Source: Selaginella moellendorffii
Lineage: Eukaryota; Plantae; Lycopodiophyta
NCBI RefSeq assembly: GCF_000143415.4
Contig: NW_003314346.1
Location: forward strand, 124,001 to 188,000
Length of the DNA: 64,000 nucleotides
Direction: 5' to 3'
Made by a program: the position numbers and the translations under genes. Under the pieces are notes generated by a model that did no database searches, was not told where the DNA came from, and was given only the letters and a program-made list of their open reading frames with translations. Below are positions 10,330 to 56,022 of the stretch, piece after piece (position 1 is the stretch's first letter; each line of letters begins with the position of its first letter).

Positions 10330-12614
10330 TCACACGATGCTTGGGGGATCGCCAGTCCAGTTCGACGTTGCCCTTTGCCATCTCGTCCGGATGCAGTCGG
10401 TCAACGGCGCATGCTGAGCCGGTTCCTCTCTCTTGTCATCACTCTGCGTGTTCTCCTCTACTGCAGGCCCTTCCACGGTCATCATGGACTCTGGTGTCCA
10501 CCTCGGAGGAACAGCAACCTTGAGCTTGGTCAGTCTTGGCCTCTGCTGCATCACGTCTGCCGCGCCTGCACTGCTGCTGCCGCTGCTGCCCGCTACAGTC
10601 TTCGCGATACCGTTGAAGTGATACAACTCAAAGTACTTCTTCCCCATTGACCCCTCTTCGTCTTTGAGGCCGCCTCTACTCTTTTCAAGGTGCATCAAGC
10701 TTTGCCACAAGTCGTTCCAGATCACGATGTCACTGCTGCAAAGATTGTCTAGAACCTGCTGTGGCATGTCAACGTTGGTGTCGATTAGAACCTGCTGTAG
10801 TGCCTCCAGGCTAATAAATCCTCCTCCCCCGCTTTGATCCTGGGCATCAAACGCCCTACGGATGGTAAACTCCCTAGCCTCGACCTCGTTCTCGTCTTGA
10901 ACGCCCGTGTCAAGAGCAAAAAGGACCGTGTAGTGGGACTCGCTGCCTACCACCCAGATTGGCCACTTTGGTCGCTTCAGGTACTGACCAACTTTGCAGA
11001 AGTTGAGAGACTCTAGCAGAGTTAAAAATCCCACTTCCACGTTGGACGGGATTCCCTTGAGGCTCATGCCACCCCCAAGGTCGTAGTTCCCGTCAAACAC
11101 ATTTGCAACAGCCTGGCCGCAGAGCAGCAGGTTTACAATCTCCTGCAAGAGACGAGCAAAGAGAGGTCAGGCCCACGAGAAAAAAGGAGATGGTTTCCTA
11201 ACAGCTTAAGAGCACAGCAAATGGGTAGGGCAGACAAGAAAAGAAGAGAGTAGCGTAATCCTTCCGCAGAAGCTCCAGATTACAAAACCTGGACCAGCAA
11301 AAACTGGTATTAGACTGCTACCAAGATGCAAGCTCACGCAGGGCTCGACTCTCTGTGTTATTCTCCTCCCACACTTTTTCGCCAATCACGCAGCTGTAAA
11401 TGATATGCTCCGAAAACGTCACCGTACCTGAGATGCATGACCAAATGGAGGAGTAACCAGAGGTTGAACTGGATCATCCCGGTCCGACTGGACAGCGTCC
11501 TGGATGTGGAACAAGAAAGTAATGCTTGCATGAATCAAATAGACGAGACATACCAGGCCCCTTGATAGCAGTGCCGAGAAGAGAAACAAGAGAGCACCCA
11601 TACGACTCCTGAACCCAGCAATCCTCTCCTGGATTTGCTGATAAAGGGTAGACAGTGACAAGACTGTGCATATTCTAACAGCTTCGCGCAGTCCGGTGGC
11701 CGAATCCAGAGCCACGCTTTCCAAAACCTGGGCAGCACCATCAGTATCAGCATATGTGCAAACCAACACCGTACTCTGTCTTGCTCTTCCTCGCTAGCGT
11801 CTGGTATGTCCATAACAGCCAGCACAGCTCTTTGGTTTCCTCCTGCTCGCCATAGCGTCTCAGCCATCGCTTGAATCAGCGCACTAGGGAAGATACAGAC
11901 AGTTAACGAAACACAAACGACAAGTTCTCTACCTGGTTCGTTCGGAGTCCTGGAATTCAAGCTGGGAAGCATCTCGCTTGTTAGGCACGAAGAGAAGATA
12001 CTTGAGCAGGGTGGCCTGGGAGGGACAAAACGCACGATCCAATTCTCTCATCCAGAGTACAGACTAACTTGATACCTGAATGGTTGCGAGCACGCCGCAA
12101 GGACCACCCTCATGCTGTACGAGTCCCAGTGATGTCTCCAGGTCGGAGCTAAACCTTTTTTTTTTTTTTTTTTGAGCAAAACGAGAAGAAGGTGAAGGGA
12201 GCGCGGAGAGAAGAAAGGTGGTTACCTGAATCCTTGGTTGCACCACTGCGCAAGGACTTCCCTGGTGACCTGAGGCCCAAAAACCATTTGGTGTAACTGC
12301 TCAGCAACAGGAAGAGGCAGCTCTTCTCCAGCTTTGGTGTTGCTGGAACTGCAACTGGAAGAAGAGGGGGGAGTAGCAGCAGCATTACCAGAGCCTTCCA
12401 GCTCCCTCGTGATGGAAGGAGTCGGGTTTCCAGCCGCGGACAGCCTCCGCTTCTCGGCAGCAGCGGCCCGGATCTCTCGCTGGAGCCTGCGTTGCGATGC
12501 TTCGTCGGGCGCCTCGGCAGTGGTGTCCCGCGACTTGGTTCGCTTTGCCTCCGGCCCAGGCTGCAAGCTCATCCGAAAAGCCCTTTGGAGCTCCTCGTCA
12601 TCCAGCGCTTCCAT
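10330..12614 (-). CDS. MINDY3: MINDY-3/4-family (FAM188/DUF4205) deubiquitinase with N-terminal UIM-like motif, multi-exon
   Basis: DDEELQRAFRMSLQ (UIM-like); catalytic Cys motif GLVQHEGGPCGVLATIQ; His motif WVVGSESHYTVLF; EF-hand-like AFDAQDQSGGGGFI; C-terminus CIRTRW...WTGDPPSIV; GT-AG introns. Confidence 0.88.
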
Positions 12615-12630
12615 CTGTTCCTCCTCCGCC

Positions 12631-14385
12631 CTAGGAGCCCATTAGGGTTAGGGCGCTCCTCCTCCACAGGAGGTAGGGATAAGATGCTTGGGACGAGGCC
12701 GTCAGGGAAACGAGGTGATTCGCCGCGCGAGCTGCCAGTGATTGATGCTCCGTTTGCCCTCGGCACGCCACCAGCAGGCTCGTCCACTCGTGCTCATCCG
12801 GTTCAAATGGCATGTTGGCCACCAGATCCCGGGCGTCCTCCACGTCTCCGGCCCGCGCCAGGATGCCCACAAGGCAGCTGTAGTGGTGCTTGGTAGCGGC
12901 CACCCCAAAATCCAGCGCCATGGAAGCAAAGCGCCGGCAGCAGCAACAGCTTGGGGACGATCTGCCTTTGTTGCTGCTCTTGGACGCTATGGCAATGATG
13001 GCCATAGCAAGGGTTGCGGCGTCCGGGACCTCCACCGTGTTCATCGCGTGGAAGAGGTCAAGCGCCTGTCCAAAATGCCCGCTGTGGGCACAAGCCGCCA
13101 TGGCCGAAGTCCACAGCGTCACGCTTCGGTCCGGCGCGCTGTCAAAGAGTCTCTGGGCCTGGCGGAGAAAACCGCCTCGCGCATATCCCGATATCAGTGT
13201 CGTGGACGACACCACGTCCTGCACAGGCATTCTCTCGAACAGCCTCTTGGCCTCGTCCAAATGCCCGCTGTGGGCGTAAGCAGCCAAGAGGGCATTCCAA
13301 GAGAACACGTCCTGCTCCGGGAGGCTGTCAAACAGCTGCTTTGGCTCGTCAACCTTGCCGTGCCGTGCAAACGCAGCGATGAGGGCATTCGCGGACACCA
13401 GATCCGCCTGCGGCATGCTGTCAAACACCTCCTTGGCCCGGGCCGGGTCGCGGGCGGCGCAAGCGGTGATCATGGCTGTGCACGACACCGAGTTTCTCAT
13501 CGGCATCGCATCGAACAGCCTCGTGGCGTCGTCCACGCGGCCGCTCCCTGCAAGCACCACTAGCATCGCCGTCCACGACACGAGGCTCCTCTCGGGCATG
13601 CCATCAAAGAGCTCCTTGGCCTCCTCCACAAGCCCCTGCTTGGAGTAGGCAGCAAGCAGCGTGTTCCACGCCACAAGGTTCCTCTCGGGCATCCGATCAA
13701 ACACCTCCTTCCCGCCCAGAGCGAGCAGCGTCGTCCAGGTGACCACATTCGTCTGCGGCATCTCCTCCAAGGTTTGCTTGGCCCTGGCAACGTGCCCAGC
13801 CCGGGCATATGCCAGGAGCAGCGCATTCCACGACACCAGGCACCTCTGCGGCATCCCTGTGAAGACCTCCTCGGCATGCGCAATGGCGCCGGCGTCCGCG
13901 TAGGCAGAGAGCATGGTGTTCCAAGAGATGGCGTCTCGCGCGGGCATCAAGTCGAAGAGGTGGCGGGCAGCGGCTGGGTGGCCGTTGTGGACGCACGCCG
14001 CGACCATGGCATTCCACGACACGAGATTCCTGGCGGGCATTGCCGCAAAGGCGTCCGCTGCATCGTCGAGGCGGCCGGCGCGAGCGCAGGCGGAGAGCAG
14101 CGCATTCCAAGAGGGCGCGTCCCACACGGGCATGTCGCGGAGGAGCATTTGTTTGGCGTCGCGCAGGTAGCCATTCCGTGCGTAGGCGGCGAGCATGAGC
14201 GCCCATGAGAATCGGTCCTTGGGCTCCGTGGCATCAAACAAATCGCGGGCGCCCTTGACGTTTCCGCACTTGCCATACTGCTCGATGAGCTTGTTCTGCG
14301 AGTACGTCGTCTTCCCGTCGCTCACACTTCCTGGCAACGAGCTACTACACACGCCGTCGCCGGCCACCTTGATCACGATGGTCAT
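12631..14385 (-). CDS. PLS-class PPR protein (mainly 31-aa short repeats, E-type C-terminus), intronless, 584 aa
   Basis: Tandem repeats such as RNLVSWNAMVAACVHNGHPAAARHLFDLMPA; E motif HYSCLVGILARAG...MPFEPDEHEWTSLLVAC. Confidence 0.9.
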   Translation of the reverse strand: MTIVIKVAGDGVCSSSLPGSVSDGKTTYSQNKLIEQYGKCGNVKGARDLFDATEPKDRFSWALMLAAYARNGYLRDAKQMLLRDMPVWDAPSWNALLSACARAGRLDDAADAFAAMPARNLVSWNAMVAACVHNGHPAAARHLFDLMPARDAISWNTMLSAYADAGAIAHAEEVFTGMPQRCLVSWNALLLAYARAGHVARAKQTLEEMPQTNVVTWTTLLALGGKEVFDRMPERNLVAWNTLLAAYSKQGLVEEAKELFDGMPERSLVSWTAMLVVLAGSGRVDDATRLFDAMPMRNSVSCTAMITACAARDPARAKEVFDSMPQADLVSANALIAAFARHGKVDEPKQLFDSLPEQDVFSWNALLAAYAHSGHLDEAKRLFERMPVQDVVSSTTLISGYARGGFLRQAQRLFDSAPDRSVTLWTSAMAACAHSGHFGQALDLFHAMNTVEVPDAATLAMAIIAIASKSSNKGRSSPSCCCCRRFASMALDFGVAATKHHYSCLVGILARAGDVEDARDLVANMPFEPDEHEWTSLLVACRGQTEHQSLAARAANHLVSLTASSQASYPYLLWRRSALTLMGS

Positions 14386-14519
14386 GGTATTTCATCTCTA
14401 CACACAGACAGCGCAACACGTACTAACTGTACAAAAGCAGTGACGCCCTTCCCGAGGACATGGAGACGTTTCAAGACTTTTCTGCACAAAAGAAAACGAT
14501 GCTGTGAGGTCACCATATC

Positions 14520-15938
14520 TTATCCTCTGTCTGTGCAGCAAAAAGAAATGGAATGCTCACCTGTGGAACAGTGCCTGGGCTCCCCGGCCTCTGAGTCGGT
14601 CAGAAACCTCTCCCAGAACACGTCGTTGAAGCCAACGCCCACGGCTCCGTTGTCAACGCTGGCACGCATCTCACCTTGGAGGGCTGCTGCTGCTGCGGCG
14701 GCTTTGGCGCTACTCTCGTTGTCCTCTGGCTCCGAGTTGAGGTTGAAGGGATGCTTTCCGGCGGCTGACTGGCTGCTTAACTCGGTCGTAACACCAGACC
14801 GTGGAGACAAGTGCCTTGCCTCTGGAGACGTCACGTCCGAGCAGGGCGTTGTCACCACGCTTGCGGCTCTGGTAGATGCCTGGTAATCCCCATCGCCGTC
14901 CCGGCTAGTAGTCACAACCTCTTCTTCCTCCCCGTCATACGCGTCGCCGCCTTCCTGCTGCCGCAGTAGCTCGCGGATAAGGAGCTCCAGCTCCAGCGAC
15001 GACTCGTGCGGTTTCTTGGACGCCAAGTCCGGGCTGTTGAAGAACTGGCTCAGCTTGTCAACCGGGTCGTAGCGGACGAGCCGGCTGTTGCTGCTGGCGC
15101 CGGCTTCTTCGAGCGCCTTCCTCTTTCTGTGGCCGCCGATGCTCGGCGAGTGGCCGCAATTGCGCCGAAGGACTTGTGCCAAGAATCCCGGGCTCTGGAT
15201 AGCCTTTGCCAGGAAAGAGATCATGTGTTTCTGGCGTTGCTCTGATCCCTGCACGCGCTGCCCCATGAGCAGCAGCTCCGTCTCCGTTTGCTGCTGCTGC
15301 TGCCTCAGCCTCACCAGCTCCAGCATCAACACGTTCTTATCCCGCTGGAGCCTGTCAACCTCCGCTTCCAATCCGAGCTTTGGCTCGCCGCCGCCACCGC
15401 TGCCGTGGTGTGCCTGCTGCGGCGGCTGCTGCTGCTGAGACGATGGCTTCTTTCTGGTGATGTTTCTGAGCAGGCTCCTGTCGCCTCGAACGAATTCCTC
15501 GTTTGCAAACTCCCATCGATCCGGATCCACCTTCCGAAATCCCTGGCCCCCAACAAAACCATGAGACCGGCTTGCTACCTAGGCCTAGAACAAACTCACA
15601 TAGGTGTTGAGCTGCCGGACAAAGCTGGAGAAATTGTTGTGCTTGAAATACTGCGGTAACAGATCCCGCGCAAACTCGGGCGGATTCCACACCACGAAGC
15701 TCGTGCCCTTGCTGCTCCACGACACAACTGGGTCGGAGGAGGCGTCGTCAATCATGTCGTATGTCTTGGTGAGGAAGGGAGCCGGGGGCGCCGCTGCTGC
15801 TGCTGCTGCTGCCGCTGCCGCTGCCGCCGCTGCCGCTGCTCCATCGCGCTGCTGGTGAGAGCAAGAGGACGATGCAGTAGACGAGGTCGCGCACACATTG
15901 GCGTGCCCATCGTCCGAGGCTGTTGTGGCGGACGCCAT
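14520..15938 (-). CDS. Class A heat shock transcription factor (2 exons; intron 15543-15599)
   Basis: [17 protein letters not shown]...[16 protein letters not shown]|[15 protein letters not shown] with the conserved intron; [21 protein letters not shown]; NLS RKRK; AHA motif NDVFWERFL; N-terminal poly-Ala. First in-frame ATG is 15938. Confidence 0.93.
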
Positions 15939-16007
15939 TGTCAGCCCGGGAACAACGCCATCCAAACCCTAGCTAGAATGTGCGCTAGCTAGGGTACACG
16001 ATGTGGG

Positions 16008-18668
16008 ATGGAGGAGCAGCACGAGATTGTGGTGCTCCTCCGGCAATGCATCCGCAGCAAGGATGCGCGCCGCGGTGTGAGCCTCCACGCCGCCATCAGC
16101 GCAAGGGGTCTGGACAGGGTGAAGCTCATCCAGGACCTCCTCGTCCACATGTACGCCAAGTGCGGCAGGCTAGACCGCGCGGTGCAAGTGTTCCAGGCCA
16201 TGGACCATCCCAACTCCACCTCCTTCAACATCCTGGCAGCGGCCTACGCCGCCAATGGCCGCCTTGACGACGCCAGGGCCACATTCGATCGCAACCCCGC
16301 CAAGGACACGGTGTCCTGGAACACGCTCATCTCTGCCTGCGCCCGTGCCGGCCGTGGCCACCAAGCCCTGGCGCTGTTCCTGGGGATGGAGCGCGACGAG
16401 GTGACACCCAACGTGGTGACTTATCTGGGAGTGATCCAGGCCTGCGCCAGCCTCCGAGACCTCGAAACGGGTAAGTCTATCCACGATAGGATTGTTGCTA
16501 TCCATCCTAGACTAGATCCTAAGCTCGCAGTCGCACTAATCAACATGTTTGGGAGATGCAGGTGTGTCGCTCGGGCTCGAGCGGTGTTCGATCGGCTTGA
16601 TTACCGAGACACGGTGGCGTGGAACGTTTTGATGTCGGCACATGCCCAGAATGGGCATCTGGAAGAAGCACGGGCAATCTTCTTTGGTGAGATGCCGCCA
16701 GAGAAACGGAGTGTTGTGTCATGGAACGTGATCATCTCAGCCTGTGCACAGGCCGGCCGTGCAGCCGACGCCCTGGAGCTTTTCCATGTCATGGGAGAGC
16801 AGGGGTTCGAGGCCGATGACGTTACGTTCCTGGCTGCTCTAGACGCGTCCTCTGTTCTGGGGGACTTAAAGAGAGGGGAGCAAATTCACTGCGCGATCAT
16901 CAGAAGCAGGGGTAGAGTGCCGAGCCTCAAGGTCGGGAACGCACTCATCAGCATGTATGGCAAGTGTGGCAGCCCTGGTGACGCATGGAATCTCTTCTGC
17001 CGCCAAGAGACAAGAGATGTGGTGTCGTGGAACGCTGCATTGGCGGCACTGGCACAGAACGGGAGGGTTGCCGAGGCTCGGCAGCTGTTCGATCGAATGC
17101 CATGCAGAGATGTCGTCTCGTGGAATACCATGATCTCCGCACTGGCCCGTAGTGGGCTTCCTGGCCAGGCAATCCAGCTCTTGAGCTCCATGACAGCGGA
17201 AGTAAAGGCCAACGCAATCACCTTCGTCAGTGCCGTGGATGCCTGCGCTGGGCTTGGCGTGATTTCTGAGGGGCGAAAGCTCCACCGGCTTGTCAGAGAA
17301 GCCGGCTGCGAGCTTGAATTGAACGTCCAAAACTCGCTCATCAACATGTATGGTAAGTGCGGCAGCGTTGGCGAGGCACGAGGGGTGTACGACGGCATGC
17401 CGTATCGGGACGTGGTGTCCTGGAACGGCATGCTTGCGGCATATTGCGCTAACGGGCATCTGCGCCAAGCTAAGCTTCTGTTTGATGAGGTTCCTGACCG
17501 GGATGTCATCTCCTGGAACATAATGGTGGCGGGCATGGCCCGGGGTGGCAGGAGCCGGGATGCGTTGCGGCTGTTTGCTTCGATGGATGTGGAGGCAATA
17601 GAGACAGACGAGATAACCGTCATTGCTGTACTAGATGCGTGCGGCAGCCTTTCAGATTTGGCTGCTGGCCGAGAAATCCAGGGGCTGTGCACAAGCATCA
17701 GCAGCAGCACCAAAGTCTGGAACTCGCTCATCTACTTCTATGGACGATGCAAGCGGAGTGACGAAGCCAGGAGCACGTTTGACAGAATGAAGGAGTGGGA
17801 TCTGGTTTCGTGGACTGCTATGGTGGGCGCATACTCTCTCGCCGGCGACTTGGAGGCTGCAAAAGCTTGCTTTGAGGCGATGCCCGAGCACGATGTTGCA
17901 GCGTGGAATGCAATGTTGACGGCTTTTATTCAGAATGGATGCGGGTCGGAGGCACTCGCAAGCTTTAAACTGATGGAGGCCAGAGGCATCGACGCTAACG
18001 AGATATCTTTGACGTCCATCCCCGAGGCGTGCCTGAGGCCGCCGGCCCATACGAAGGATGCGGAGTTTGTGTACGCGAGAAGTGTGAGCAGCGGTATCCG
18101 GTCCGTGCTGATCGACAATGCGCTGATTAGGATGCTCGGAAAGTGCTGCAATGCAGCCCGAGCAAGGCGAACATTCAATCAAATGAGTGAGCGAAGCGTT
18201 GTCAGCTGGAACTCCATGGTTGCTGCATATGCCCATAGTGGTCATCTTGCCGAAGCGGGCGAAGTTGCTACCCACATGATCGTCGAGGGTGAGATGCCCA
18301 ACGAGGTGACCTCTGTGATACTGCTTGCAAGCTACAGCCACGCGGGCATGCTCTTCCGCTCGATCGCTCACTTCGTGAAGATGCAGCGCGAGTTTTGGAT
18401 CCTGCCAGAGGCCGACCACTTCAGCTGCATGGTGGATGTTTTGGCCCGCTCTGGGAGGCTGCGTGACGCTGAGCAGCTGGTTGCCACCATGTCATACGAA
18501 CCAGACATGCAGGTGTGGCTGGCCTTGGTTGGGGGATGTAACATGCATGGACATGTTCAAGGTGGGGCACTTGCTGCTCAGCAGGCCTGGGAGCTGGATC
18601 CGCAGAGCTCCGCTCCCTATATCCTCACCTCGAATCTCTACAAAGCTCCACCCGTGGTGAGAACGTAA
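16008..18668 (+). CDS. PLS-class PPR protein, E subgroup, intronless, 886 aa
   Basis: P/L/S repeats (NALISMYGKCG, RDVVSWN...); E motif HFSCMVDVLARSG...WLALVGGCNMHG...ELDPQSSAPYILTSNLY. Confidence 0.93.
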   Translation: MEEQHEIVVLLRQCIRSKDARRGVSLHAAISARGLDRVKLIQDLLVHMYAKCGRLDRAVQVFQAMDHPNSTSFNILAAAYAANGRLDDARATFDRNPAKDTVSWNTLISACARAGRGHQALALFLGMERDEVTPNVVTYLGVIQACASLRDLETGKSIHDRIVAIHPRLDPKLAVALINMFGRCRCVARARAVFDRLDYRDTVAWNVLMSAHAQNGHLEEARAIFFGEMPPEKRSVVSWNVIISACAQAGRAADALELFHVMGEQGFEADDVTFLAALDASSVLGDLKRGEQIHCAIIRSRGRVPSLKVGNALISMYGKCGSPGDAWNLFCRQETRDVVSWNAALAALAQNGRVAEARQLFDRMPCRDVVSWNTMISALARSGLPGQAIQLLSSMTAEVKANAITFVSAVDACAGLGVISEGRKLHRLVREAGCELELNVQNSLINMYGKCGSVGEARGVYDGMPYRDVVSWNGMLAAYCANGHLRQAKLLFDEVPDRDVISWNIMVAGMARGGRSRDALRLFASMDVEAIETDEITVIAVLDACGSLSDLAAGREIQGLCTSISSSTKVWNSLIYFYGRCKRSDEARSTFDRMKEWDLVSWTAMVGAYSLAGDLEAAKACFEAMPEHDVAAWNAMLTAFIQNGCGSEALASFKLMEARGIDANEISLTSIPEACLRPPAHTKDAEFVYARSVSSGIRSVLIDNALIRMLGKCCNAARARRTFNQMSERSVVSWNSMVAAYAHSGHLAEAGEVATHMIVEGEMPNEVTSVILLASYSHAGMLFRSIAHFVKMQREFWILPEADHFSCMVDVLARSGRLRDAEQLVATMSYEPDMQVWLALVGGCNMHGHVQGGALAAQQAWELDPQSSAPYILTSNLYKAPPVVRT

Positions 18669-20775: not shown

Positions 20776-21474
20776 TCACGCTGGGCCATAGTCGGACTTG
20801 ACGTAGATGGGCACTTGCTCCCTTTTGGCGCGCTCGGCCTTGTCCGCCTTGATCGCCCACGGTGCTCTCATGTCGATGGTCTCGCCGCCGGGGAGCTCCA
20901 CGATGCCGTCCTGGGCGGTGGCCTTGAGCAGCAGCTTGCGCAGCTTGAGGATGTGGTCGAAGAGCTCGCTGGGCTCCTTGTGCTTGAGGCAAAACGCGCG
21001 CTCGTTGTAACCCAGCGGCTCCAGCAGGATGAGACGGGGCGACTCCAGCTCCTTGGTGTAACTCGGGTCCTCCACCGTCTCCAGCGTCGGCATCAAGGCC
21101 GTCTCGGCAAAGTCGGAGGTGCACACCATCGGGTGCGTCTCCACCGACATGCTTATCAGGTGGGGGAACTCTATGTACATGCCCGTGTGAACCAGCGGAT
21201 CCACGATCCGGCGCACACGGTACGTGTTGTCCAGCTCCCTGCAAAACCTCTCGTCATTCATTCCCTTCCCAAGAAAGAGAGCAAAGGCGCACCTTGCCTT
21301 GATCCACTCCTTGATCTTTCGCACGCCATAGCTACATTTATCCTCGCTTACCTTGATGTTCATGCGGTCCTCGAAGATGTCATCCTCTCCCTCGGACGAT
21401 GAGGAGCTCCACCGCCGCAGCAGCCTCGCACACCCATTCCTCGTCGCCGCTGGACATCGCCTCACAAAGAGCAT
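20776..21474 (-). CDS. Uncharacterised 232-aa protein with Arg-rich, mitochondrial-like N-terminus, intronless
   Basis: Uninterrupted ORF with strong G/C third-position bias; N-terminus MLFVRRCPAATRNGCARLLRRWSSS; no recognised domain. Confidence 0.65.
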   Translation of the reverse strand: MLFVRRCPAATRNGCARLLRRWSSSSSEGEDDIFEDRMNIKVSEDKCSYGVRKIKEWIKARCAFALFLGKGMNDERFCRELDNTYRVRRIVDPLVHTGMYIEFPHLISMSVETHPMVCTSDFAETALMPTLETVEDPSYTKELESPRLILLEPLGYNERAFCLKHKEPSELFDHILKLRKLLLKATAQDGIVELPGGETIDMRAPWAIKADKAERAKREQVPIYVKSDYGPA

Positions 21475-21510
21475 CTGGCCTTAGACCCTAGCAAAACCCT
21501 TGTTACACAG

Positions 21511-22726
21511 TTAATTCTCATTTTCAACTTGTTCTTCCACGTATGGGCACGTCCCGTCGTCTACGGTGGCGAGCGGGTCGTAGAATGGGTTCTCTTTGTC
21601 TGTACAGCCCGGGTTGAGATCCAAGTCACACTTCCACCCCTGCAAAAATGCACTCACACAAGCTGAGCCACAGCACGCTCGTTTTGCCTTGACTTGCCTC
21701 TGGATTGTATGGCGGTAGAGGGCATCTGTCCATCACCAGCACTGCCTCTGGGTAGATGGCATTGTCACAGGCTCCATCCTTGGACAGTTCGGCTGCCAGT
21801 CCCTGGTAGGAAGAGGAGGAAGACAATCACTGCTTTGAACTTCACGAGCAGTGTAATTTCAAGTACCTCGCTGAAGAAACTTGAAGGCTTGTTCCGAAAC
21901 TTGGGTGGCACCGCCACGTTCAACTTGTAAGGCCCATCCCAGTCCTTGCCATTTGTAAACGAAAACTCCAAGCTCAGTGCTGCCAGCCAGCCAGCCAAGC
22001 AAAGCCGGAATGTGAATAGTTGTTTAATGCCGACAAACGCGTCAGGCACGTACTATGCTTTGGGAGATTGATCTTGATGCTGTACAAAGGAGCACAAGAG
22101 TTGCCGCGATCCTTCTTTGTCATGATTCGTGGCTCGCCTCCACACATAATTGGCTGGTTGAATCCTCCTGCAAACAAACGCCAGGATTTGAGGAAAAATG
22201 ATAGACCGCAGACGCTTACCGTTGAAGGCAACCCCGTAGACGTCGTTGGGCTTCAAGGAAGACGCGTCCGGATTGAAGAAAATGATGAGCTGCCCTCCCT
22301 GCTTGATAATATATTTATCACACTCACTGTGCCACAGACTTTGAAAATGACAAGCTCACTTACAGCAGCAGGAGGCTGGCCATCACTTGCTTGCCACCAG
22401 ACTGGAAACTTGCCAAGCTCGAATGCGGACCATGACGGGCGAGTATATCTGCTCAAACACACCGCAAATTGGAGCGGCAACGAAGCAAAATCATGGCAAA
22501 CCATCAGTACCTGTCGATAGTCTTCTCCGAGGCAACAGCAGCAATTCGCAGCTTCCGCCGCGGTACCAGCTTTGTCTGCCTGATCGCTTCACATTCCGCA
22601 AGTGAAGAGCTATCTGCAAACACAAAACAAACAGTGTGAGAAGCAGAAGAAATCGCACGACAACTTACAGAGTGACGATCTCCTGATGCCCAGAACTGGG
22701 TGGTTGCTAAGAGCTGCGGTGGCCAT
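21511..22726 (-). CDS. PIFI: POST-ILLUMINATION CHLOROPHYLL FLUORESCENCE INCREASE-like plastid protein, multi-exon
   Basis: [63 protein letters not shown]...[14 protein letters not shown]; ATG 22726, TAA 21511-21513. Confidence 0.88.
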
Positions 22727-22789
22727 GGAAGACAGCCACACCCTCAAGCTAGGAGCCACAGATATTTTTCTTGCTAAACAGCGCTTTGT

Positions 22790-39806: not shown

Positions 39807-39865
39807 GATCGCGTTCCCTTCCTTTTGACCTTAAAAAAACAAGTTCCTTCCCTAGAACTGGAACT

Positions 39866-48088: not shown

Positions 48089-50009
48089 CCAAGATCCTCA
48101 CCACCTTTCTCAAGAACAGCTTCTCATCAGACCTGTACTTCAACGCCGACTTCCATCTCACGGACTTGTCCTCTCCAGCTGCCGCTGTTGGAAAGCCCAT
48201 AAGTGAGCTACGCGAAGACCGAAAACCAAGAAAGAAGAGACTCCTTACCCATGAGCTTCACATCTTGTTCGTAGCTACTTGGATATGCTGACAGTAGCTG
48301 CCGGCATTCCTTCTGTAGCTCCCTCACGGCTCGCTTTTCCATGCTAGGCAGAAACGGGAGATCCGCATCCGACCACATCGGGAGAATCCGAGCTGCTGCA
48401 AGAACAGCTCCATCTGCCATGGGATCGTCTGTGCCTGTGACGAGCAACAAAGATGCTTTTCACGGGTTTGAAAAGAGCACCGCATACCTCTCAGGTAGTA
48501 ATTTGGCCCCAGCCCACTGATCCCAAACGCAGATAGGAATGAGTCCCTGTGGATGGAAACCGAGCCACTGAACTTGACAACATTCCAAGGATTCTGCAAA
48601 AGAAAGAACCACTTTGGTCATCGTTGTTTGTGTAGGGCGTTGTCTATACCACTGGTGAAGAGAAGCCAAACCGGTGCATGTAGTCTCGCGTCGGGTTCTT
48701 TGGCAAGTAGTCAAGCGTCATCTGCTCATACACAGAACTTTTAGCTGCGTGTGAGAAAAAAGAAACACACTAACCTCGTCTCCCTCTCTAATCGTCTGCC
48801 CGGCCTTGACCACCACTTCGAGCACCCGATCGCAGGCTCGCCATCGCAAGGAACAAGTTGGTTGAAACGAGTGATTTAGCATATCTACGCACACCGAGAG
48901 AAGAAAAACAAACGAGAATTACGATGACCATCAAAGTATGTGGTGTTACCAGCGTAGGGGGAGATTATGTTGGCAACTTGGACTTTAGAACCGATCTTCA
49001 TGGTTAGTGTGTGCGAGCGTGACCTTGCCATGCCAACGGCCCATTTGAACCTGTCGCTGTCTCGGGCCAAGCGTTTTAGCTTCAAAGGCGCCCCCGGATG
49101 CTGCCACGAGGAAGTAAAACTCAGCTATGATCTCTGGAAATGTTACAAGTCTACTCACAAAACACTCCTCCCATTTCTTCTGAATCTTCTCCTGCTCGTC
49201 CTTGATGCACTGAGAAAGCACGGAATCTTGTAGCGCGTCAAGTTCTTCCTGAGGGACAAAAGAGAAACCATGGTTTCCTTGAGAAGATCTGACAACCAGC
49301 TTACCTCGGTTGCAAGAAGCAAGTCCGTGCTCTCTGCCTGATTTGGAAGATAGTCTCCGTAAAGCCTCCAGAAGTTGCCGTCTTGCTCGAGCGCCAGCAG
49401 CAGGAGGCACCCCAGCCTGATATCGTAGTCTGTCTGGAATGAAAAAACTCTCAGTCCACAGAGACCGTGTAACTCCCTGGCACTCACCTCGGGATCAGTC
49501 GAGTTGATAACATCAAACACTGGGTGACCGATTGGTACAATATCCGGGAAGAACATCCAAGGGAGATTGCTGCTCACGGTGACAAGTATCTCCATGGGTA
49601 CTTCGAGTATAACCTGTGGAGGAAGAGAGAAGGATGGATAAGTTCTTTGGTCAGAGTTTCATGTCCCAGAAAGCAATCCAGACTTACCCACCCTTGGCCT
49701 CTCAATGTCGGTCATGTCTTTGGCAGCATACACTCCAACTCCATCCGGCCCTTCCTTGAAGTGGACACCGTATGCTCGGACGTGGCGGAGGTGCCCGATT
49801 GTGTAGTACTCGGGCTGCATCAGCTCCACTCCCTGCCTCGCCTCCTCCACTTGAGGCTGGGGCGGCGCAGCCACCATTGCTGCTGCTGCCGCTACTCTCC
49901 TCCTCCCACATTTTAAGCCTCTCCCACATATGGATTTGGAGCTGGCAAACCTGTCCAGCGATGGCACCAATGGCGCTGCTGCTGCTGCTGCTACCAGATG
50001 ATATCCCAT
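48060..50009 (-). CDS. PTAC14: PLASTID TRANSCRIPTIONALLY ACTIVE 14 (SET-domain PEP-associated protein), multi-exon
   Basis: VRAYGVHFKEGPDGVGVYAAKD, PWMFFPDIVPIGHPVFDVINSTDPE, FWRLYGDYLP, AARILPMWSDAD, C-terminus ALKYR...LDVYLSRLLY* (TGA 48060-48062). Confidence 0.9.
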
Positions 50010-50084
50010 CCAAGAGCAAAGAGAACGCGCGCTTCTCAAGACTCCATATTTTTCTATCGCTTGCCCTAGTTAGGGCTGTGAGCG

Positions 50085-50898
50085 ATGACAATGGCGCGAG
50101 CGCGTGCGCGGCTGCCATCTCTCCACTTGCGTAAGTCGCGCTTACATCCATCGCTCTAAATTACACTCTTCTTCTCCAGCAGGAGGAGCTGGCGAAGCAT
50201 TCTCTTTTGTTGCCAGGTACTTCTTTGCTTCTCTCTCCTTTCTTCTAAGCTTGTCACTCCAGGCGAATGCAACACTCGGACAAGGGCATGATCGGGACCA
50301 CGGTTCTTTGCATCCGCAAGAATGACTCGGTGGTGATAATCGGGGACGGGCAAGTCACCATGGGCGCCGAGATACTCAAGCCCAACGTACGTAAGGTCCG
50401 AAGGATTGGGGAGAATGTGATCGGAGGCTTTGCAGGTAGCGCTTTGCTTGATTGAGCTTACATAGCCATGACAATGGTCGAGCAGGCGCCACCGCTGATG
50501 CTTTCACTCTGTTTGAAAGGCTGGAGACGAAGCTGGAAGAACACCCTGGTCTGGTCTCACGAAAAAAAGCCCCGTTTGTCCCCTGAAAGCTTGTTTTGAT
50601 CTCAGGCCAGGTACCGCACTTTGTTCGTGGATCGAGAGCTTGAAAAAATTTATCTTGTGAGCAATGGCAGCTAACGCGGGCTGCGGTGGAGCTTGCAAAA
50701 GCATGGAGAACTGACAAGTTCCTTCGAAGGCTCGATGTAAGTGAAAACTCAATCATGTTCTCGTTTGCAAGTCCTTGTGCTAAATTGTTTCATCCAGGCA
50801 TTGATGGTGGTAGCGGATGCCGAGATATCCTTGACGATCACAGGCACTGGAGATGTTCTAGAGCCGTATGATGGAATTGTGGGTACGAGAGCCTCTCT
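50085..50898 (+). pseudogene. 3'-truncated duplicate of the HslV gene
   Basis: The HslV exons stop after EPYDGIV at the duplication junction. Confidence 0.75.
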
Positions 50899-51852
50899 CT
50901 GTCTCGGGCCAAGCGTTTTAGCTTCAAAGGCGCCCCCGTGATGCTGCCACGAGGAAGTAAAACTCAGCTATGATCTCTGGAAATGTTACAAGTCTACTCA
51001 CAAAACACTCCTCCCATTTCTTCTGAATCTTCTCCTGCTCGTCCTTGATGCACTGAGAAAGCACGGAATCTTGTAGCGCGTCAAGTTCTTCCTGAGGGAC
51101 AAAAGAGAAACCATGGTTTCCTTGAGAAGATCTGACAACCAGCTTACCTCGGTTGCAAGAAGCAAGTCCGTGCTCTCTGCCTGATTTGGAAGATAGTCTC
51201 CGTAAAGCCTCCAGAAGTTGCCGTCTTGCTCGAGCGCCAGCAGCAGGAGGCACCCCAGCCTGATATCGTAGTCTGTCTGGAATGAAAAAACTCTCAGTCC
51301 ACAGAGACCGTGTAACTCCCTGGCACTCACCTCGGGATCAGTCGAGTTGATAACATCAAACACTGGGTGACCGATTGGTACAATATCCGGGAAGAACATC
51401 CAAGGGAGATTGCTGCTCACGGTGACAAGTATCTCCATGGGTACTTCGAGTATAACCTGTGGAGGAAGAGAGAAGGATGGATAAGTTCTTTGGTCAGAGT
51501 TTCATGTCCCAGAAAGCAATCCAGACTTACCCACCCTTGGCCTCTCAATGTCGGTCATGTCTTTGGCAGCATACACTCCAACTCCATCCGGCCCTTCCTT
51601 GAAGTGGACACCGTATGCTCGGACGTGGCGGAGGTGCCCGATTGTGTAGTACTCGGGCTGCATCAGCTCCACTCCCTGCCTCGCCTCCTCCACTTGAGGC
51701 TGGGGCGGCGCAGCCACCATTGCTGCTGCTGCCGCTACTCTCCTCCTCCCACATTTTAAGCCTCTCCCACATATGGATTTGGAGCTGGCAAACCTGTCCA
51801 GCGATGGCACCAATGGCGCTGCTGCTGCTGCTGCTACCAGATGATATCCCAT
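50899..51852 (-). pseudogene. 3'-truncated duplicate of pTAC14 (5' exons only)
   Basis: Copy of 49057-50009 ending at the junction, with a 1-nt insertion at ~50939. Confidence 0.75.
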
Positions 51853-51927
51853 CCAAGAGCAAAGAGAACGCGCGCTTCTCAAGACTCCATATTTTTCTAT
51901 CGCTTGCCCTAGTTAGGGCTGTGAGCG

Positions 51928-53074
51928 ATGACAATGGCGCGAGCGCGTGCGCGGCTGCCATCTCTCCACTTGCGTAAGTCGCGCTTACATCCATCGCTCT
52001 AAATTACACTCTTCTTCTCCAGCAGGAGGAGCTGGCGAAGCATTCTCTTTTGTTGCCAGGTACTTCTTTGCTTCTCTCTCCTTTCTTCTAAGCTTGTCAC
52101 TCCAGGCGAATGCAACACTCGGACAAGGGCATGATCGGGACCACGGTTCTTTGCATCCGCAAGAATGACTCGGTGGTGATAATCGGGGACGGGCAAGTCA
52201 CCATGGGCGCCGAGATACTCAAGCCCAACGTACGTAAGGTCCGAAGGATTGGGGAGAATGTGATCGGAGGCTTTGCAGGTAGCGCTTTGCTTGATTGAGC
52301 TTACATAGCCATGACAATGGTCGAGCAGGCGCCACCGCTGATGCTTTCACTCTGTTTGAAAGGCTGGAGACGAAGCTGGAAGAACACCCTGGTCTGTCTC
52401 ACGAAAAAAAGCCCCGTTTGTCCCCTGAAAGCTTGTTTTGATCTCAGGCCAGGTACCGCACTTTGTTCGTGGATCGAGAGCTTGAAAAAATTTATCTTGT
52501 GAGCAATGGCAGCTAACGCGGGCTGCGGTGGAGCTTGCAAAAGCATGGAGAACTGACAAGTTCCTTCGAAGGCTCGATGTAAGTGAAAACTCAATCATGT
52601 TCTCGTTTGCAAGTCCTTGTGCTAAATTGTTTCATCCAGGCATTGATGGTGGTAGCGGATGCCGAGATATCCTTGACGATCACAGGCACTGGAGATGTTC
52701 TAGAGCCGTATGATGGAATTGTGGGTACGAGAGCCTCTCTTTGTTTTCCTCTCTCAGTTTTGATGCTTCAAACCAGGCATTGGCTCTGGAGGCTCGTATG
52801 CCTCCGCTGCTGCTCGGGCTCTCATGGATCTCCCTGACATGGACGCCGAGAAGATCGGTAAGGCAACCATAGTAGCGCCCGCATCGACCGTCTGACAAAG
52901 GATTTTGCTTTGTCCGCAGCTAGAAAGGCCATGAAAATCGCCGCCGACTGTTGCATCTACACGAACCACAACTTCACGCTCGAGACGATCAAGGTGACGC
53001 CCAGGAGCCCCGACGTTGACAATCAAGCCGCTACTATATCGGTGCCGGGAGCCACCACTACCAAGGGATCCTGA
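51928..53074 (+). CDS. hslV: ATP-dependent protease subunit HslV (ClpQ), mitochondrial-type presequence, multi-exon
   Basis: [10 protein letters not shown]...GMIG|TTVLCIRK...[18 protein letters not shown]...[54 protein letters not shown]. Confidence 0.92.
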
Positions 53075-53132
53075 TTGATTGACTGACCATGTAACATCAC
53101 GAGTTGAGTATCAGCAAACTTAGTCGCGGTGA

Positions 53133-54704
53133 ATGTGGAATAAGAAGGTTCATTGCACGACACTGATCTGCGCATATGGCCGGCAAGGGCACTCGGACAC
53201 TGCAAAGCTGATTTTCGATCGAATGTTAGACAAGGATGCGATATCCTGGAACGCACTCTTGTCCGCCTACGCCCAGCAGGCGGATGCCGCAGCTATCGCG
53301 CTCGCCAAGATGCCGCAGCACAACACCGTGTCGTGGACAAGTGTTTTGGGTGCATATGCCCGCAAAGGGCAACATAGAGAGGCACGCGATATTTTTGATG
53401 GCATGCTGCAGCGAGACTTTGCATCGTGGAATGCAATGCTGTATGGGCTTGCAGAGAGCAAGATGGTGTCGCAAGCGGCGGATGTGTTTGCCAAGATCCC
53501 GCAGCGAAGCCCCGCTGCCTGGAATGCTGCAATACTAGCATATGCCACCACCGGTCATATCGAGCTCGCTCGGTTTACCATGGATTCCATGCCTGATCCC
53601 GACAGTGCGTGCATGAGCACAGTGTTCGTGGCATACGCGCAGCATGCACCCTCTGCAGAAGCAAAGATCCTCTTTGATAAGTTGCGGGAGCGGAATCTCG
53701 TGCTGTGGGGCCTCATGTTTCAAGCGCTTGCCCGTGCTGGTGATCTGGACGCGGCTGAGCAGCTCTTCCTGGCCATGCCCGCCACGGATGTTGTCTCGTG
53801 GACGGCTCTTGTCCAAATCTACGCGGAAGCCGGGGAGGTGACCAAAGCGAACACTGTTTTCTTTACCACCATGCCATGCCGCAACGTGGTATCATGGAAC
53901 CTGTTGATTGCTACCAATGCCCAGGGTGGGTATCTGCAACTCGCTTACGCACTCTTGTTCCGGATGCCACAGGAAAGCATTTCGGCGTGGAATTCCATCC
54001 TGGCTTCGGATCATCTTAGCCCACAAGCGGCAAGCCAGGTGTTTGTAGCGATGCCAAAGCGGGATGTCACGTCATGGACAAGCATGCTTGCAGTATATAG
54101 ACGATCACGGGACAAGACAATGGTGAAGCAGCTGTTTGACGAGATGCCAGAGCGCAACATTGTTTCTTGGAACGTTGCTCTGTCAGGGCTTGCCACGGAC
54201 GCTGGCATGGCCAAGCACGTCTTCGACAGAATGCCGGCATGGGACTGTGTTTCTCAAAACTCGCTGCTCGCAGTTTATGCCCAAAACGGGCATCTGGAAT
54301 CAGTGAGCTCCTGGTTCGAGTGCATCACGGAGAAGGACTCAGCCTCATGGGACATAGCCATTTCAGTGTTTGCCAGGAACGGAGAGAGCAACCGGGCGTT
54401 TGGGCTCTTGCATCAAGCGATCTTGGAAGGAAACCCCTGCACACAGATGGACATTGCATTCCTGGGGCTTCTCAACGCATGCAATCACCTCGGCCTTGTG
54501 CATCGGGGGCTCTCGTTGTTCCTGTCGATGCAAAGTGACCATAGCATTGACCCGTCCCACTATCACTACTGCTGCATGCTCGACACCTTGGGGCGTGCCG
54601 GGCAACGGTCTAACGCGGAACAATTGCTACAAACAATGCCATTCGAGCCGAGCGAAGTGGCATGGAAGGCAGTGCTTAGCTCCGAAACCCGAGTTTTGGA
54701 ATAA
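53133..54704 (+). CDS. PLS-class PPR protein (short-repeat rich), truncated E domain, intronless, 523 aa
   Basis: KDAISWNALLSAYAQ-type repeats; HYCCMLDTLGRAG...MPFEPSEVAWKAVLS then stop. No presequence; an in-frame TGA lies directly before the ATG. Confidence 0.8.
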   Translation: MWNKKVHCTTLICAYGRQGHSDTAKLIFDRMLDKDAISWNALLSAYAQQADAAAIALAKMPQHNTVSWTSVLGAYARKGQHREARDIFDGMLQRDFASWNAMLYGLAESKMVSQAADVFAKIPQRSPAAWNAAILAYATTGHIELARFTMDSMPDPDSACMSTVFVAYAQHAPSAEAKILFDKLRERNLVLWGLMFQALARAGDLDAAEQLFLAMPATDVVSWTALVQIYAEAGEVTKANTVFFTTMPCRNVVSWNLLIATNAQGGYLQLAYALLFRMPQESISAWNSILASDHLSPQAASQVFVAMPKRDVTSWTSMLAVYRRSRDKTMVKQLFDEMPERNIVSWNVALSGLATDAGMAKHVFDRMPAWDCVSQNSLLAVYAQNGHLESVSSWFECITEKDSASWDIAISVFARNGESNRAFGLLHQAILEGNPCTQMDIAFLGLLNACNHLGLVHRGLSLFLSMQSDHSIDPSHYHYCCMLDTLGRAGQRSNAEQLLQTMPFEPSEVAWKAVLSSETRVLE

Positions 54705-54783
54705 GTAATGACGATAATTACTCTAGGGTTTTGGGAGGGTTCGGAAACCCGAGCAGCATGGGAAGGGAGGGGGGTGGGCGGCG

Positions 54784-56022
54784 ATGAGCTTGGGACCGGG
54801 GATGGCGCTGGCACAGGGGAGCAGGCGCTGCAATGCATTCCGGCAGCAGCATATAAGCTTGTTCCATTGCTCAGCATCGCTGCAAGAGAAATGGCGGTGC
54901 AAATACAAAAATGTGAGTGATTTTCTTCCCTCATTCCTTCTGATCTCCTCGATGCTGTGGTGCTGCAGAGAACGGGCTACGATTCCGACAATAGCCACAA
55001 GGTGAGGTGAGTTGAGCTTTGCCAAAGAAAAAATGCGTTTTCTTTTCTTCGCTGGTATTGATTTTTTCGTGTGGGCAGAAATTCGTAGCATATGAGAGGC
55101 GTTTAGAGAGGGCTGCACACCGCAAGGATTTATTGAATTGGAGGCTCCACGTTACATTTAGTGAGCTCGAGGTTGATCATTTCCAGTGCCACAAAACTAT
55201 AGCTGCTAGTCCTGGTCCCGGTTCTTTTTGCGGTGCTTGCTGGGCTGATTTCTCTTTCTGCCAATCTGCAGGGATCATACACATCAACGAAGCCCAAGTC
55301 GCAAGACTTTCGGTGGAATCGCAAGAAGGTGACCTCCAAGAAGACAAACGACTGGGAGGCGTACTTGAAGTACGAAGGCGACTGGGAGAGGTTTTGTAGG
55401 AAGTTTACGAATTTATCCGGTAAGCACTTGTTTCCTGTCTTCTGTCTCCGTTGTGGACATCACTCATCGAGAGAGTGGACAGATTTTGAGACGCGTAGGC
55501 CTCGGTCTCAGAAAGAACGGGCTAAGAAGATGTGGCACGAATGGGACTCGTCAGACTCGTCGGACTCGGACGACGACGACGACGATGACGACGATGGCTG
55601 GGATGACGATCCAACGTTTGGAAGGCAATATCACAAGACTAGCAGGCCTCGGGTAGAACAAACGTTCAAGGGGAAACCTGTAGTCACCGTTGGACAAAGG
55701 TCGGACCGCCTGGCTCTTGGGCTTCCTCCGGCAGGCTCCTTGACAATGGAGCAGCTCAAAGCAGCGTAAGTTTGGTCTCGTTAGTGCCTTGTTTCTTACC
55801 CATGTCTGTTTCTTTTGTCGCCGCACAGCTTCCGTGCATCCGCATTGAAATGGCACCCGGACCGCCACCAAGGCTCTACCAAGGTTTGATGAATGCAGTT
55901 GCGTGTTTTGTAAACCTTTGCTTCTTGACCTTTTCTTGTAGGAAACCGCCGAAGAGAAATTCAAAATGTGCGGTAACGCTTATAGAGCTCTGTGTAGCGC
56001 CCTGGCTGAGAAGAGAGCTTAA
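54784..56022 (+). CDS. DnaJ-domain protein (C-terminal J domain), probable mitochondrial presequence, multi-exon
   Basis: SLFHCSASLQEKW presequence-like segment; SDRLALGLPPAGSLTMEQLKAA|FRASALKWHPDRHQGSTK|..AEEKFKMCGNAYRAL (HPD motif). Confidence 0.85.

Follow-up and report, generated by a model that had tools for sequence, protein, structure and literature searches.

Tight gene spacing and telo-boxes ahead of start codons suggest closely packed, separate transcription units in a gene-dense island of Selaginella moellendorffii

The window, a stretch of 64,000 nucleotides, belongs to scaffold GL377650.1 of the S. moellendorffii assembly GCA_000143415.2 (record position = window position + 124000). 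The public gene models used here, which are CDS-only calls without UTRs, place 22 genes between positions 10330 and 56022 of the window, at a density of 0.48 genes per kb; coding sequence makes up 67% of this interval. The stretch is a gene-dense island of the nuclear genome. All of the 22 models had an ATG at the start and a stop codon at the end; the starts of PPR584, PPR717 and PPR523 are nevertheless uncertain. A plausible targeting peptide was lacking in all three of these PPR proteins, and a DYW domain in two, among them PPR584. PPR genes are greatly expanded in S. moellendorffii. No gene calls were obtained for 41581-43132, and Pfam returned no match for the 214-aa gene, the 167-aa gene or an ORF at 41990-42766. 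The main features are listed in Table 1.

Table 1. Genes, gene chains and spacers of the gene-dense island (window positions)
Feature	Position	Strand	Basis and remarks
MINDY-3/4 deubiquitinase gene, 572 aa	10330-12614	-	Gene call; Pfam PF13898; downstream gene of the 16-bp gap
16-bp spacer and last PPR584 codons	12615-12650	-	AACCCTAA at -35 from the MINDY ATG; CTAGGG at -22 to -16
PPR584, intronless PLS-type PPR ORF	12631-14385	-	Pfam PPR; occupies the 1.86 kb from HSF to MINDY
85-bp spacer, HSF to PPR584	14386-14470	-	No telo-box; RNA contigs from runs X1, X2 and X11 span it unbroken
Heat-shock transcription factor (HSF) gene, 443 aa	14471-15938	-	PF00447 on exon 1, E = 4.5e-21
69-bp head-to-head spacer, HSF/PPR886	15939-16007	.	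Two outward-facing telo-boxes: AAACCCTAG 15964-15972, CTAGGGT 15989-15995
PPR886, intronless PPR gene	16008-18668	+	Gene call and Pfam
APC1 (22790-29877), 63-bp gap, PIFI (21511-22726), 36-bp gap, 214-aa gene (20776-21474)	20776-29877	-	Gene calls
C97 peptidase, 180-bp gap, 167-aa gene, 59-bp gap, cytochrome b5, 89-bp gap, NDUFA12, 142-bp gap, PROPPIN	36986-41460	-	Gene calls
SET/pTAC14-like gene (48060-50009), last 29 nt overlapping the annotated ATG of DYW-type PPR717 (45935-48088)	45935-50009	-	Gene calls, Pfam
Proteasome subunit, 58-bp gap, PPR523 (53133-54704), 79-bp gap, DnaJ (54784-56022)	50288-56022	+	Gene calls

Stop-to-ATG gaps between same-strand neighbours were 16, 85, 771, 36, 63, 605, 704, 142, 89, 59, 180, -29, 58 and 79 bp, 10 of the 14 being 180 bp or shorter, with a median of 82 bp. 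Nine of the ten short gaps of the original prediction (16, 36, 58, 59, 63, 79, 89, 142 and 180 bp) were reproduced exactly by the gene models, as was its 29-bp overlap. A tenth gap of 134 bp was absent from the models and probably involved 41581-43132, the stretch for which gene calls were lacking, while the 85-bp gap between HSF and PPR584 had been missing from the list.

Same-strand gaps were shorter than opposite-strand gaps (median 82 bp vs 375 bp; one-sided Mann-Whitney p = 0.023, with small n). Strand switches occurred at 7 of the 21 adjacencies (p = 0.095), and both co-orientation and the length of strand runs were within chance expectation. Short spacers were also found where co-transcription is impossible, namely in the 69-bp head-to-head spacer (ATG to ATG) between HSF and PPR886 and in tail-to-tail spacers at other S. 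moellendorffii loci (stop to stop; 58 and 67 bp at L005, 30 bp at L008), indicating that same-strand pairs are not alone in having short gaps. Spacing was much looser at the sampled loci L004, L005 and L007. The observation of tight spacing was confirmed: the compaction is real and recurrent, and polycistrony was not demonstrated.

An unbiased comparison of 2040 hexamers between the 100 nt before the 22 ATGs and the remainder of the stretch identified the telo-box hexamer TAGGGT/ACCCTA, with its longer forms CTAGGGTT / AACCCTAA and AAACCCTA, as the most enriched motif (10 inside, 1 outside, p = 3e-13). Ranks 2-5 were overlapping fragments of the telo-box, and a GAAGAA motif was co-enriched. 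The placement was nearly fixed. Among the 11 TAGGGT sites in the 46 kb, 10 lay within 100 nt before an ATG, nine of the 11 at a distance of 16-34 nt, 10 shared a common orientation and none was located in the interior of a CDS.

A telo-box was present 16-60 nt before 10 of the 22 ATGs, including the five that follow short gaps of 16, 36, 79, 89 and 142 bp. The motif lay within the spacer itself in the latter four cases, and in the last PPR584 codons in the case of the 16-bp spacer, where the TAG of the CTAGGG preceding MINDY is the PPR584 stop codon. In the other chains, CTAGGGT was located 16 nt before the ATG of the 214-aa gene, TAGGGT 33 nt before that of APC1, telo-boxes 17-20 nt before those of C97, NDUFA12 and PROPPIN, and CTAGGGTTTT 60 nt before that of DnaJ. 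Eleven of the 22 genes were without an exact telo-box. These included PPR584 (85 bp), PPR717 (-29) and PPR523 (58 bp), as well as PIFI (63 bp), the 167-aa gene (180 bp) and cytochrome b5 (59 bp), the last carrying only the variant CTAGGGA.

The placement near the ATG was replicated at the independent locus L008. The 78-bp spacer before the DNA polymerase alpha gene contained TTTCCCGCC, which we take to be E2F-like, plus TTAGGGTTT adjoining the ATG, and the 109-bp spacer before the next gene carried AACCCTAA at -19. Judged by sequence, these sites would belong to the land-plant telo-box promoter class, which has a AAACCCTA-type motif near the ATG that is scarce in CDS and in 3' regions. In that class, TRB-type proteins bind the motif and transcription starts at or beside it. 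In Arabidopsis and rice, telo-boxes are concentrated in 5' UTRs and depleted in 3' UTRs and CDS (PMC3022908), and in four grasses the enrichment of AAACCCTAG falls precisely on the primary start site (PMC9827901). The ribosomal-protein genes of S. moellendorffii carry the telo-box near the start codon, and the GAAGAA motif is co-enriched with it in Arabidopsis (PMC3212954). The motif and its position here are the same as in these land plants. The sites of this island differ in that they are located in spacers of 16-142 bp after the previous stop, once inside the previous CDS, and precede varied genes (HSF, PPR, APC1, PROPPIN, NDUFA12, DnaJ) rather than just translation-related ones.

RNA was available as assembled contigs from four runs (X1, X2, X11 and X17), with one depth figure per contig. 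Run X17, considered as a possible 5'-end library, was rejected as uninformative; its contigs were unspliced, of depth 2 and DNA-like. Searches with PPR886, PPR523, Phi_1 and PPR584 recovered the genome record only and no RNA assembly. The NDUFA12 exon search recovered orthologues and no S. moellendorffii transcript contig, P0001 being the sole match from this species.

Most of the RNA evidence came from the chain of HSF, PPR584 and MINDY. At least six introns of MINDY and the two HSF introns (15542-15598 and 14482-14560) were recovered as joints in RNA contigs from two studies, all of them GT..AG on the minus strand, and the spliced HSF frame was checked. Only 10 nt separate the last HSF intron from the stop codon; thus, the final exon is nearly all post-stop. 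In the MINDY frame, no start codon lies between an upstream stop and the annotated ATG, and RNA contigs end approximately 80-100 nt beyond the MINDY stop codon. Within the 85-bp spacer, an out-of-frame ATG lies 10 nt and an in-frame TGA 9 nt before the PPR584 ATG. A spliced contig of 3919 nt, found in two studies, ran from HSF through PPR584 into MINDY across the 85- and 16-bp gaps, with no intron between PPR584 and MINDY exon 1, and a separate contig spanned the 69-bp head-to-head spacer. RNA contigs were therefore continuous over all three of these spacers, a contig not being equivalent to a single molecule. Since contigs cross both the HSF-PPR584-MINDY junctions and the head-to-head spacer, some RNA begins upstream of the proposed start sites.

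Mean contig depth in run X11 was 57-92 for the MINDY 3' exons, 29 for the PPR584-containing contig and 37 for HSF, which is only suggestive of separate units. The contig over the 5' part of PPR584 had a depth of 32 vs 37 for HSF, which would also fit an HSF transcript continuing into PPR584. No foreign letters indicating a common spliced leader, as in the trans-spliced operons of nematodes and kinetoplastids, were found at the 5' side of MINDY or PPR584 among the loose ends and joints listed for the contigs; this is a weak test, since contigs drop rare forms. Even where genes in the stretch have a free 3' flank, canonical poly(A) hexamers were absent, and they are therefore unusable for placing 3' ends in this species. 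The sole clear case was the 142-bp spacer between NDUFA12 and PROPPIN, where a perfect tandem repeat of 44 bp holds two AATAAA, both ahead of the PROPPIN telo-box.

The original prediction had offered two alternatives, co-transcribed polycistronic units translated by leaky scanning, reinitiation or after processing, or promoters and terminators lying inside neighbouring coding sequence. The latter agrees with the observations, a telo-box promoter motif lying 16-60 nt before 10 of the 22 ATGs, for MINDY inside the last PPR584 codons, and RNA contigs crossing the 16- and 85-bp gaps unbroken; the former was not supported. Upstream ORFs were 459-5184 nt long (7 of 11 exceeding 680 nt), and between 9 and 135 ATG triplets per pair precede the downstream start in the genomic span, 12 of them inside the exactly spliced HSF CDS. 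Leaky scanning is thereby excluded, and the downstream promoter motifs and the equally short opposite-strand gaps also argue against leaky scanning or reinitiation on a polycistronic mRNA. Operon-like units of the green-algal type, in which a single promoter and a single poly(A) site yield an mRNA for several proteins, are accordingly very improbable here. The inter-ORF distances of 16-180 nt do fall within the range of algal bicistronic loci (medians 40-260 nt; PMC7896298, PMC11291117), including the occasional overlap of stop and start, and RNA contigs bridge both junctions examined. However, ORF1 of algal loci is short (median 291-600 nt), ATG-poor and has a weak start context, and the locus carries a single promoter mark and a single poly(A) site (Gallaher et al. 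2021, PMC7896298; Duenas et al. 2024, PMC11291117), while here it is neither short nor depleted in ATGs. A promoter motif precedes downstream genes, five of them after short gaps, which disagrees, on indirect, motif-based grounds, with a single promoter at the head of each chain. The two AATAAA ahead of the PROPPIN telo-box, the functionally unrelated neighbours within chains, the chance level of co-orientation and the 2- to 3-fold differences in depth between X11 contigs of one chain all point in the same direction.

The three PPR genes without a telo-box require separate consideration. It is quite unlikely that HSF-PPR584, SET-PPR717 and proteasome-PPR523 are truly co-transcribed, the PPR being the 3' part of a bicistronic mRNA and expressed through reinitiation, internal entry or RNA processing. 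This possibility is consistent with ORFs that begin 85, -29 and 58 bp after the upstream stop, with the spliced contig linking HSF to PPR584 in two studies, with the similar X11 depths of HSF and the 5' part of PPR584, and with the nearly all post-stop final exon of HSF. Under established rules of plant nonsense-mediated decay, however, transcripts with 1.8 kb of sequence beyond the stop, or with spliced MINDY introns there, should be degraded. The upstream ORFs of these pairs, 711-1413 nt with 16-56 ATGs before the PPR start, exclude leaky scanning, and reinitiation after long ORFs is very inefficient, as established in earlier work (discussed in PMC11291117). The joint contigs do not represent single molecules. 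Furthermore, at other loci PPR ORFs lie only 30-67 bp from tail-to-tail neighbours, which shows that close packing of PPR genes does not depend on a shared orientation. Improbable to a greater degree is the version in which PPR584, PPR717 and PPR523 form a promoterless subset that depends on the mRNA of the housekeeping gene directly upstream, either as its second cistron or through a 3' product processed from it; if true, a land plant would have nuclear bicistronic mRNAs that are functional despite a long first ORF, by a translation or RNA-processing mechanism unlike algal leaky scanning.

The same genes raise the question of annotation. Wrong start codons, or truncated PPRs that are decaying copies in otherwise normal spacers, may account in part for the pattern, in which case the 16-, 85-, -29-, 58- and 79-bp values would not be gene-to-gene distances. 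All five of these extreme gaps flank PPR584, PPR717 or PPR523, and the missing targeting peptides and DYW domains described above fit with decay. For PPR717, a second in-frame ATG 96 nt downstream, at 47992, would turn the overlap into a 67-bp gap. Variants in the RNA contigs (nonsynonymous to synonymous) were 7 to 4 in PPR584, compatible with neutrality (expected nonsynonymous fraction 0.75), vs 1 to 5 in HSF. We nevertheless consider this explanation unlikely. The PPR ORFs are open over 523-717 codons, with no stop among the variants, and are covered by RNA; the position of the MINDY ATG behind an in-frame stop and the uninterrupted passage from PPR584 into MINDY exon 1 in the RNA contigs also argue against it. 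The junctions not involving these PPRs (36, 59, 63, 89, 142 and 180 bp) are flanked on either side by genes with homology support.

The arrangement is probably best explained by separate, overlapping RNA polymerase II transcription units that are tightly packed, start at telo-box initiation regions and produce their own capped monocistronic mRNAs, with read-through RNAs as by-products. Most genes would have an initiation region of their own, the telo-box (CTAGGGTT / AACCCTAA) located 16-60 nt ahead of the ATG, and their 5' leaders would consequently be very short. The remainder of the promoter, together with the 3' UTR and cleavage site of the upstream gene, would lie in or over the neighbouring CDS, and this overlap would cause short-read RNA assemblies to fuse neighbours into one contig. 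The telo-box may thus mark the actual start sites in these spacers, and upstream mRNAs would end inside downstream genes. A gap of 16 bp with separate expression of both genes requires transcript overlap, and a telo-box just before the next ATG suggests extreme packing of separate units, not operons. Every protein, including those of the downstream genes, would then be made from its own capped, monocistronic mRNA, multi-gene read-through RNAs probably existing only as by-products.

Overlapping transcription units have reportedly been found in the compacted genomes of microsporidia and nucleomorphs. In those genomes, spacers are too short for UTRs and promoters and transcripts carry parts of neighbouring genes, with one mRNA per protein. 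The spacers described here resemble them in being too short for UTRs and promoters. Unlike them, S. moellendorffii is a vascular plant whose genome, at approximately 100 Mb, is not compact overall, and the continuity across neighbouring genes was seen in assembled contigs. In cotton, as far as the Iso-Seq study (PMC6797763) is summarised in PMC7896298, neighbours occur on common as well as monocistronic transcripts, with no evidence of translation of the second ORF from the long form; the joint transcripts of S. moellendorffii, in contrast, are known from assembled contigs and not from long reads. The literature search returned no paper on polycistronic nuclear mRNAs, Iso-Seq or tight gene spacing in S. 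moellendorffii, and the 2017 transcriptome paper on this species did not treat gene fusion or overlap.

Separate, overlapping units would do away with the tempting but unsupported idea of vascular-plant operons, with one narrow exception, the closely following PPR genes without a promoter motif. For genome annotation, they would mean that short-read assemblers fuse neighbours and that UTR models overlap. If this reading is right, the island shows a minimal working junction of plant promoter and terminator, in which a telo-box 16-35 nt ahead of the ATG suffices and the remainder lies in the CDS of the neighbour. Such junctions would be relevant to transcriptional interference between tandem plant genes and to compact plant expression cassettes.

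The window corresponds to scaffold GL377650.1 of assembly GCA_000143415.2 (record position = window + 124000), as established by four exact-protein look-ups. The public models of this scaffold place 22 called genes in 10330-56022, with no gene calls obtained for 41581-43132, and in all 22 the model limits are coding limits, from an ATG start to a terminal stop codon. The same-strand stop-to-ATG gaps were 16, 85, 771, 36, 63, 605, 704, 142, 89, 59, 180, -29, 58 and 79 bp. Nine of the ten gaps listed in the original prediction, which had proposed operon-like chains of co-oriented genes, and its 29-bp overlap were matched exactly; its 134-bp gap is absent from these models, and the 85-bp gap was missing from its list. 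Gene density was 0.48 per kb and the coding share 67%. The median gap was 82 bp between same-strand neighbors versus 375 bp between opposite-strand neighbors (one-sided p = 0.023, n = 14 and 7). Co-oriented runs were no longer than by chance (the strand switched at 7 of 21 adjacencies, p = 0.095). Since run length is that of chance and the gaps are short, the spacing is unusual but the chains themselves are not: the predicted tight packing is real and, as regards spacing, beyond chance. This spacing has long been visible in the public gene models.

Genes and other sequence features of the window
Feature	Position	Strand	Basis or description
MINDY-3/4 deubiquitinase (MINDY)	10330-12614	-	direct Pfam identification
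PPR584	12631-14385		direct Pfam identification
Heat-shock transcription factor (HSF), 443 aa	14471-15938		PF00447 on exon 1, E = 4.5e-21
PPR886	16008-18668		direct Pfam identification
PPR523	53133-54704		direct Pfam identification
PPR717, PPR640, R2R3 MYB, Phi_1/EXORDIUM	window		direct Pfam identification
APC1, PIFI, p450, PROPPIN, NDUFA12, cytochrome b5	window		gene-call tables
C97 peptidase, protein kinase, SET/pTAC14-like gene (SET), proteasome subunit, DnaJ	window		gene-call tables
ATG ORF, 258 aa	41990-42766	+	no Pfam match; in 2.1-kb stretch 41461-43551 between C97 and kinase
Telomere-repeat arrays, interstitial	3741-3805; 8624-8789		TTTAGGG type, both orientations; in gene-poor DNA to the left of the dense island
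Simple repeat	15780-15847		probable poly-alanine tract (18 A) of HSF exon 1; masked, RNA contigs break here
Tandem repeat	38306-38396		perfect, 44 bp, 2.1 copies, one AATAAA per copy; NDUFA12-to-PROPPIN spacer
Tandem duplication	49091-50853; 50934-52695		period 1842-1843 bp, 99-100% identity; SET 5' part, head-to-head spacer, proteasome 5' part
12-nt repeat, GTCCGAGATGGA	61765-62063		about 25 units, higher-order periods 35 and 93 nt; within overlapping ORFs of both strands, outside 10330-56022

The public models at the tandem duplication are nested or duplicated (an additional SET fragment and a proteasome model of 188 aa), and the duplication is either a very recent event or an assembly artefact.

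Reading of the junction sequences revealed CTAGGGT(T) recurring immediately 5' of start codons. All 2040 hexamers were then tested without bias for enrichment in the 100 nt ahead of the 22 ATGs relative to the remainder of 10330-56022; the plant promoter motif TAGGGT/ACCCTA (telo-box) ranked top (10 inside, 1 outside, p = 3e-13), followed by the overlapping telo-box pieces CTAGGG, AGGGTT, TTAGGG and GGGTTT; GAAGAA was likewise enriched. The 11 TAGGGT sites lie at -16, -17, -18, -18, -20, -23, -33, -33, -34, -60 and -139 from an ATG; 10 of them share one orientation relative to their gene, and none of the 11 is internal to a coding sequence in 10330-56022. Telo-boxes were found in spacers of 36 bp (before a 214-aa gene), 79 bp (DnaJ), 89 bp (NDUFA12) and 142 bp (PROPPIN), as well as before C97, APC1 and PPR640, and the 69-bp spacer between HSF and PPR886 contains two, both pointing outwards. 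The MINDY copy, AACCCTAA, lies within the final codons of PPR584, whose stop codon TAG belongs to the CTAGGG at -22 to -16 of MINDY. Two AATAAA precede the telo-box in the PROPPIN spacer, so that terminator-like and promoter signals adjoin there. The site at 43413, 139 nt 5' of the kinase ATG, may indicate that the kinase model has a misplaced start or upstream exon.

Similar arrangements were detected at S. moellendorffii loci outside the window. On scaffold GL377623.1 (locus L008), DNA polymerase alpha is preceded by a same-strand spacer of 78 bp that carries TTTCCCGCC and TTAGGGTTT abutting the ATG, and the 109-bp spacer before the following gene has the MINDY-type motif, AACCCTAA, at -19. 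TTTCCCGCC matches an E2F-type site, which fits an S-phase gene. Locus L004 has two more telo-box sites, 20 and 143 nt 5' of start codons. There, too, only 5 bp (15461-15465) separate a 111-aa model from the CFA20 gene on the same strand; this model, which may be split or wrong, itself contains a telo-box, 113 nt ahead of the CFA20 start codon. In L008, a PPR gene and DNA polymerase alpha lie tail to tail with their stops 30 bp apart (12999-13028); in locus L005 the tail-to-tail distances beside PPR genes are 58 and 67 bp (11819-11876, 15656-15722). In all three pairs the 3' ends must overlap in antisense.

Telo-boxes of Arabidopsis and rice cluster in 5' UTRs and are underrepresented in coding sequence and 3' UTRs, and have been proposed to mark cryptic polymerase II promoters (PMC3022908). 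Among longer motifs, AAACCCTAG alone showed enrichment precisely at the primary start site in four grasses, where its TA flanks the start (PMC9827901). Nearness of the telo-box to start codons in S. moellendorffii is published already for ribosomal-protein genes, in which it is enriched (PMC3212954). From this behavior and the positions of the sites, we infer that transcription starts within the spacers and gives leaders of about 15-60 nt.

A survey of 24 runs, all assembled contigs whose RNA status was only guessed, identified 16 with at least half of the sampled words of 10330-16329, and four runs from different studies were aligned to 10130-16129. Run X17 was unspliced, DNA-like and of depth 2, and was rejected as RNA evidence. 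Runs X1 and X2 each contained a single 3919-nt contig in which HSF, the 85-bp spacer, the entire PPR584, the 16-bp spacer and MINDY exons follow one another unbroken. It lacked both HSF introns, 15542-15598 and 14482-14560, as well as four or more introns of MINDY, all GT..AG on the minus strand; therefore these runs are RNA, the gene models are confirmed, and both spacers are covered by transcripts. One contig over two genes does not prove one transcript. Where the gap is only 16 bp, mRNAs made separately would necessarily overlap, and their assembly would look alike. In run X11 the region was split among several contigs, with a break at 14020-14064 and mean depths of 37 (HSF), 32 (a 420-nt contig over the HSF end, the spacer and the 5' portion of PPR584), 29 (most of PPR584 with MINDY exon 1) and 57-92 (MINDY 3' exons). 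As each contig has one depth figure, this is only suggestive; it would fit the combination of an HSF mRNA ending a few hundred nt inside PPR584, a weakly expressed PPR584 and a separate MINDY start. The head-to-head spacer of 69 bp is spanned by another contig, so some RNA begins beyond it. Neither poly(A) tails nor common leader sequences were present among the listed loose ends of the aligned contigs.

The predicted operon-like polycistronic translation was not supported. Green-algal polycistronic loci are recognized by an ORF1 that is short (median 291-600 nt) and has a weak start context, by a scarcity of ATGs ahead of ORF2, by a single promoter mark and a single poly(A) site, and by long reads that cover both ORFs (PMC7896298, PMC11291117). 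The upstream coding sequences in the window, in contrast, are 459-5184 nt long and place 9-135 ATGs ahead of the downstream start, which excludes leaky scanning; translation is known to reinitiate inefficiently past ORFs of this length (discussed in PMC11291117). The exactly spliced HSF coding sequence alone has 12 ATGs. By established plant rules, an mRNA with spliced introns far 3' of a stop codon should undergo nonsense-mediated decay. Moreover, genes neighboring within a chain have unrelated functions, and opposite-strand pairs reach short gaps too (69 bp ATG to ATG); co-transcription cannot explain such head-to-head and tail-to-tail pairs.

Three close followers had no telo-box, namely PPR584 after HSF (85 bp), PPR717 after SET (-29 bp) and PPR523 after the proteasome gene (58 bp), and the five most extreme gaps (16, 85, -29, 58 and 79 bp) all flank one of them. 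No plausible targeting peptide is present in any of the three. In PPR584 and PPR523, and likewise in PPR886, which also lacks such a peptide, the ORF opens with a PPR motif and closes with an E motif that is truncated. These genes may be fast-evolving or decaying copies filling ordinary spacers. Nonsynonymous to synonymous variants in the RNA contigs were 7 to 4 in PPR584 versus 1 to 5 in HSF; the numbers are small, but the PPR584 ratio is compatible with neutrality and suggests relaxed constraint. The three genes may also start at internal promoters within the upstream gene. Expression from the upstream transcript, with operon-like translation of polycistronic mRNAs, is the least likely reading and of low probability.

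The best-supported mechanism, which we consider probable, is local compaction so extreme that separate transcription units overlap, each of which would start at a telo-box micro-promoter. The novelty is modest: the region is a clear new example of a phenomenon already known.
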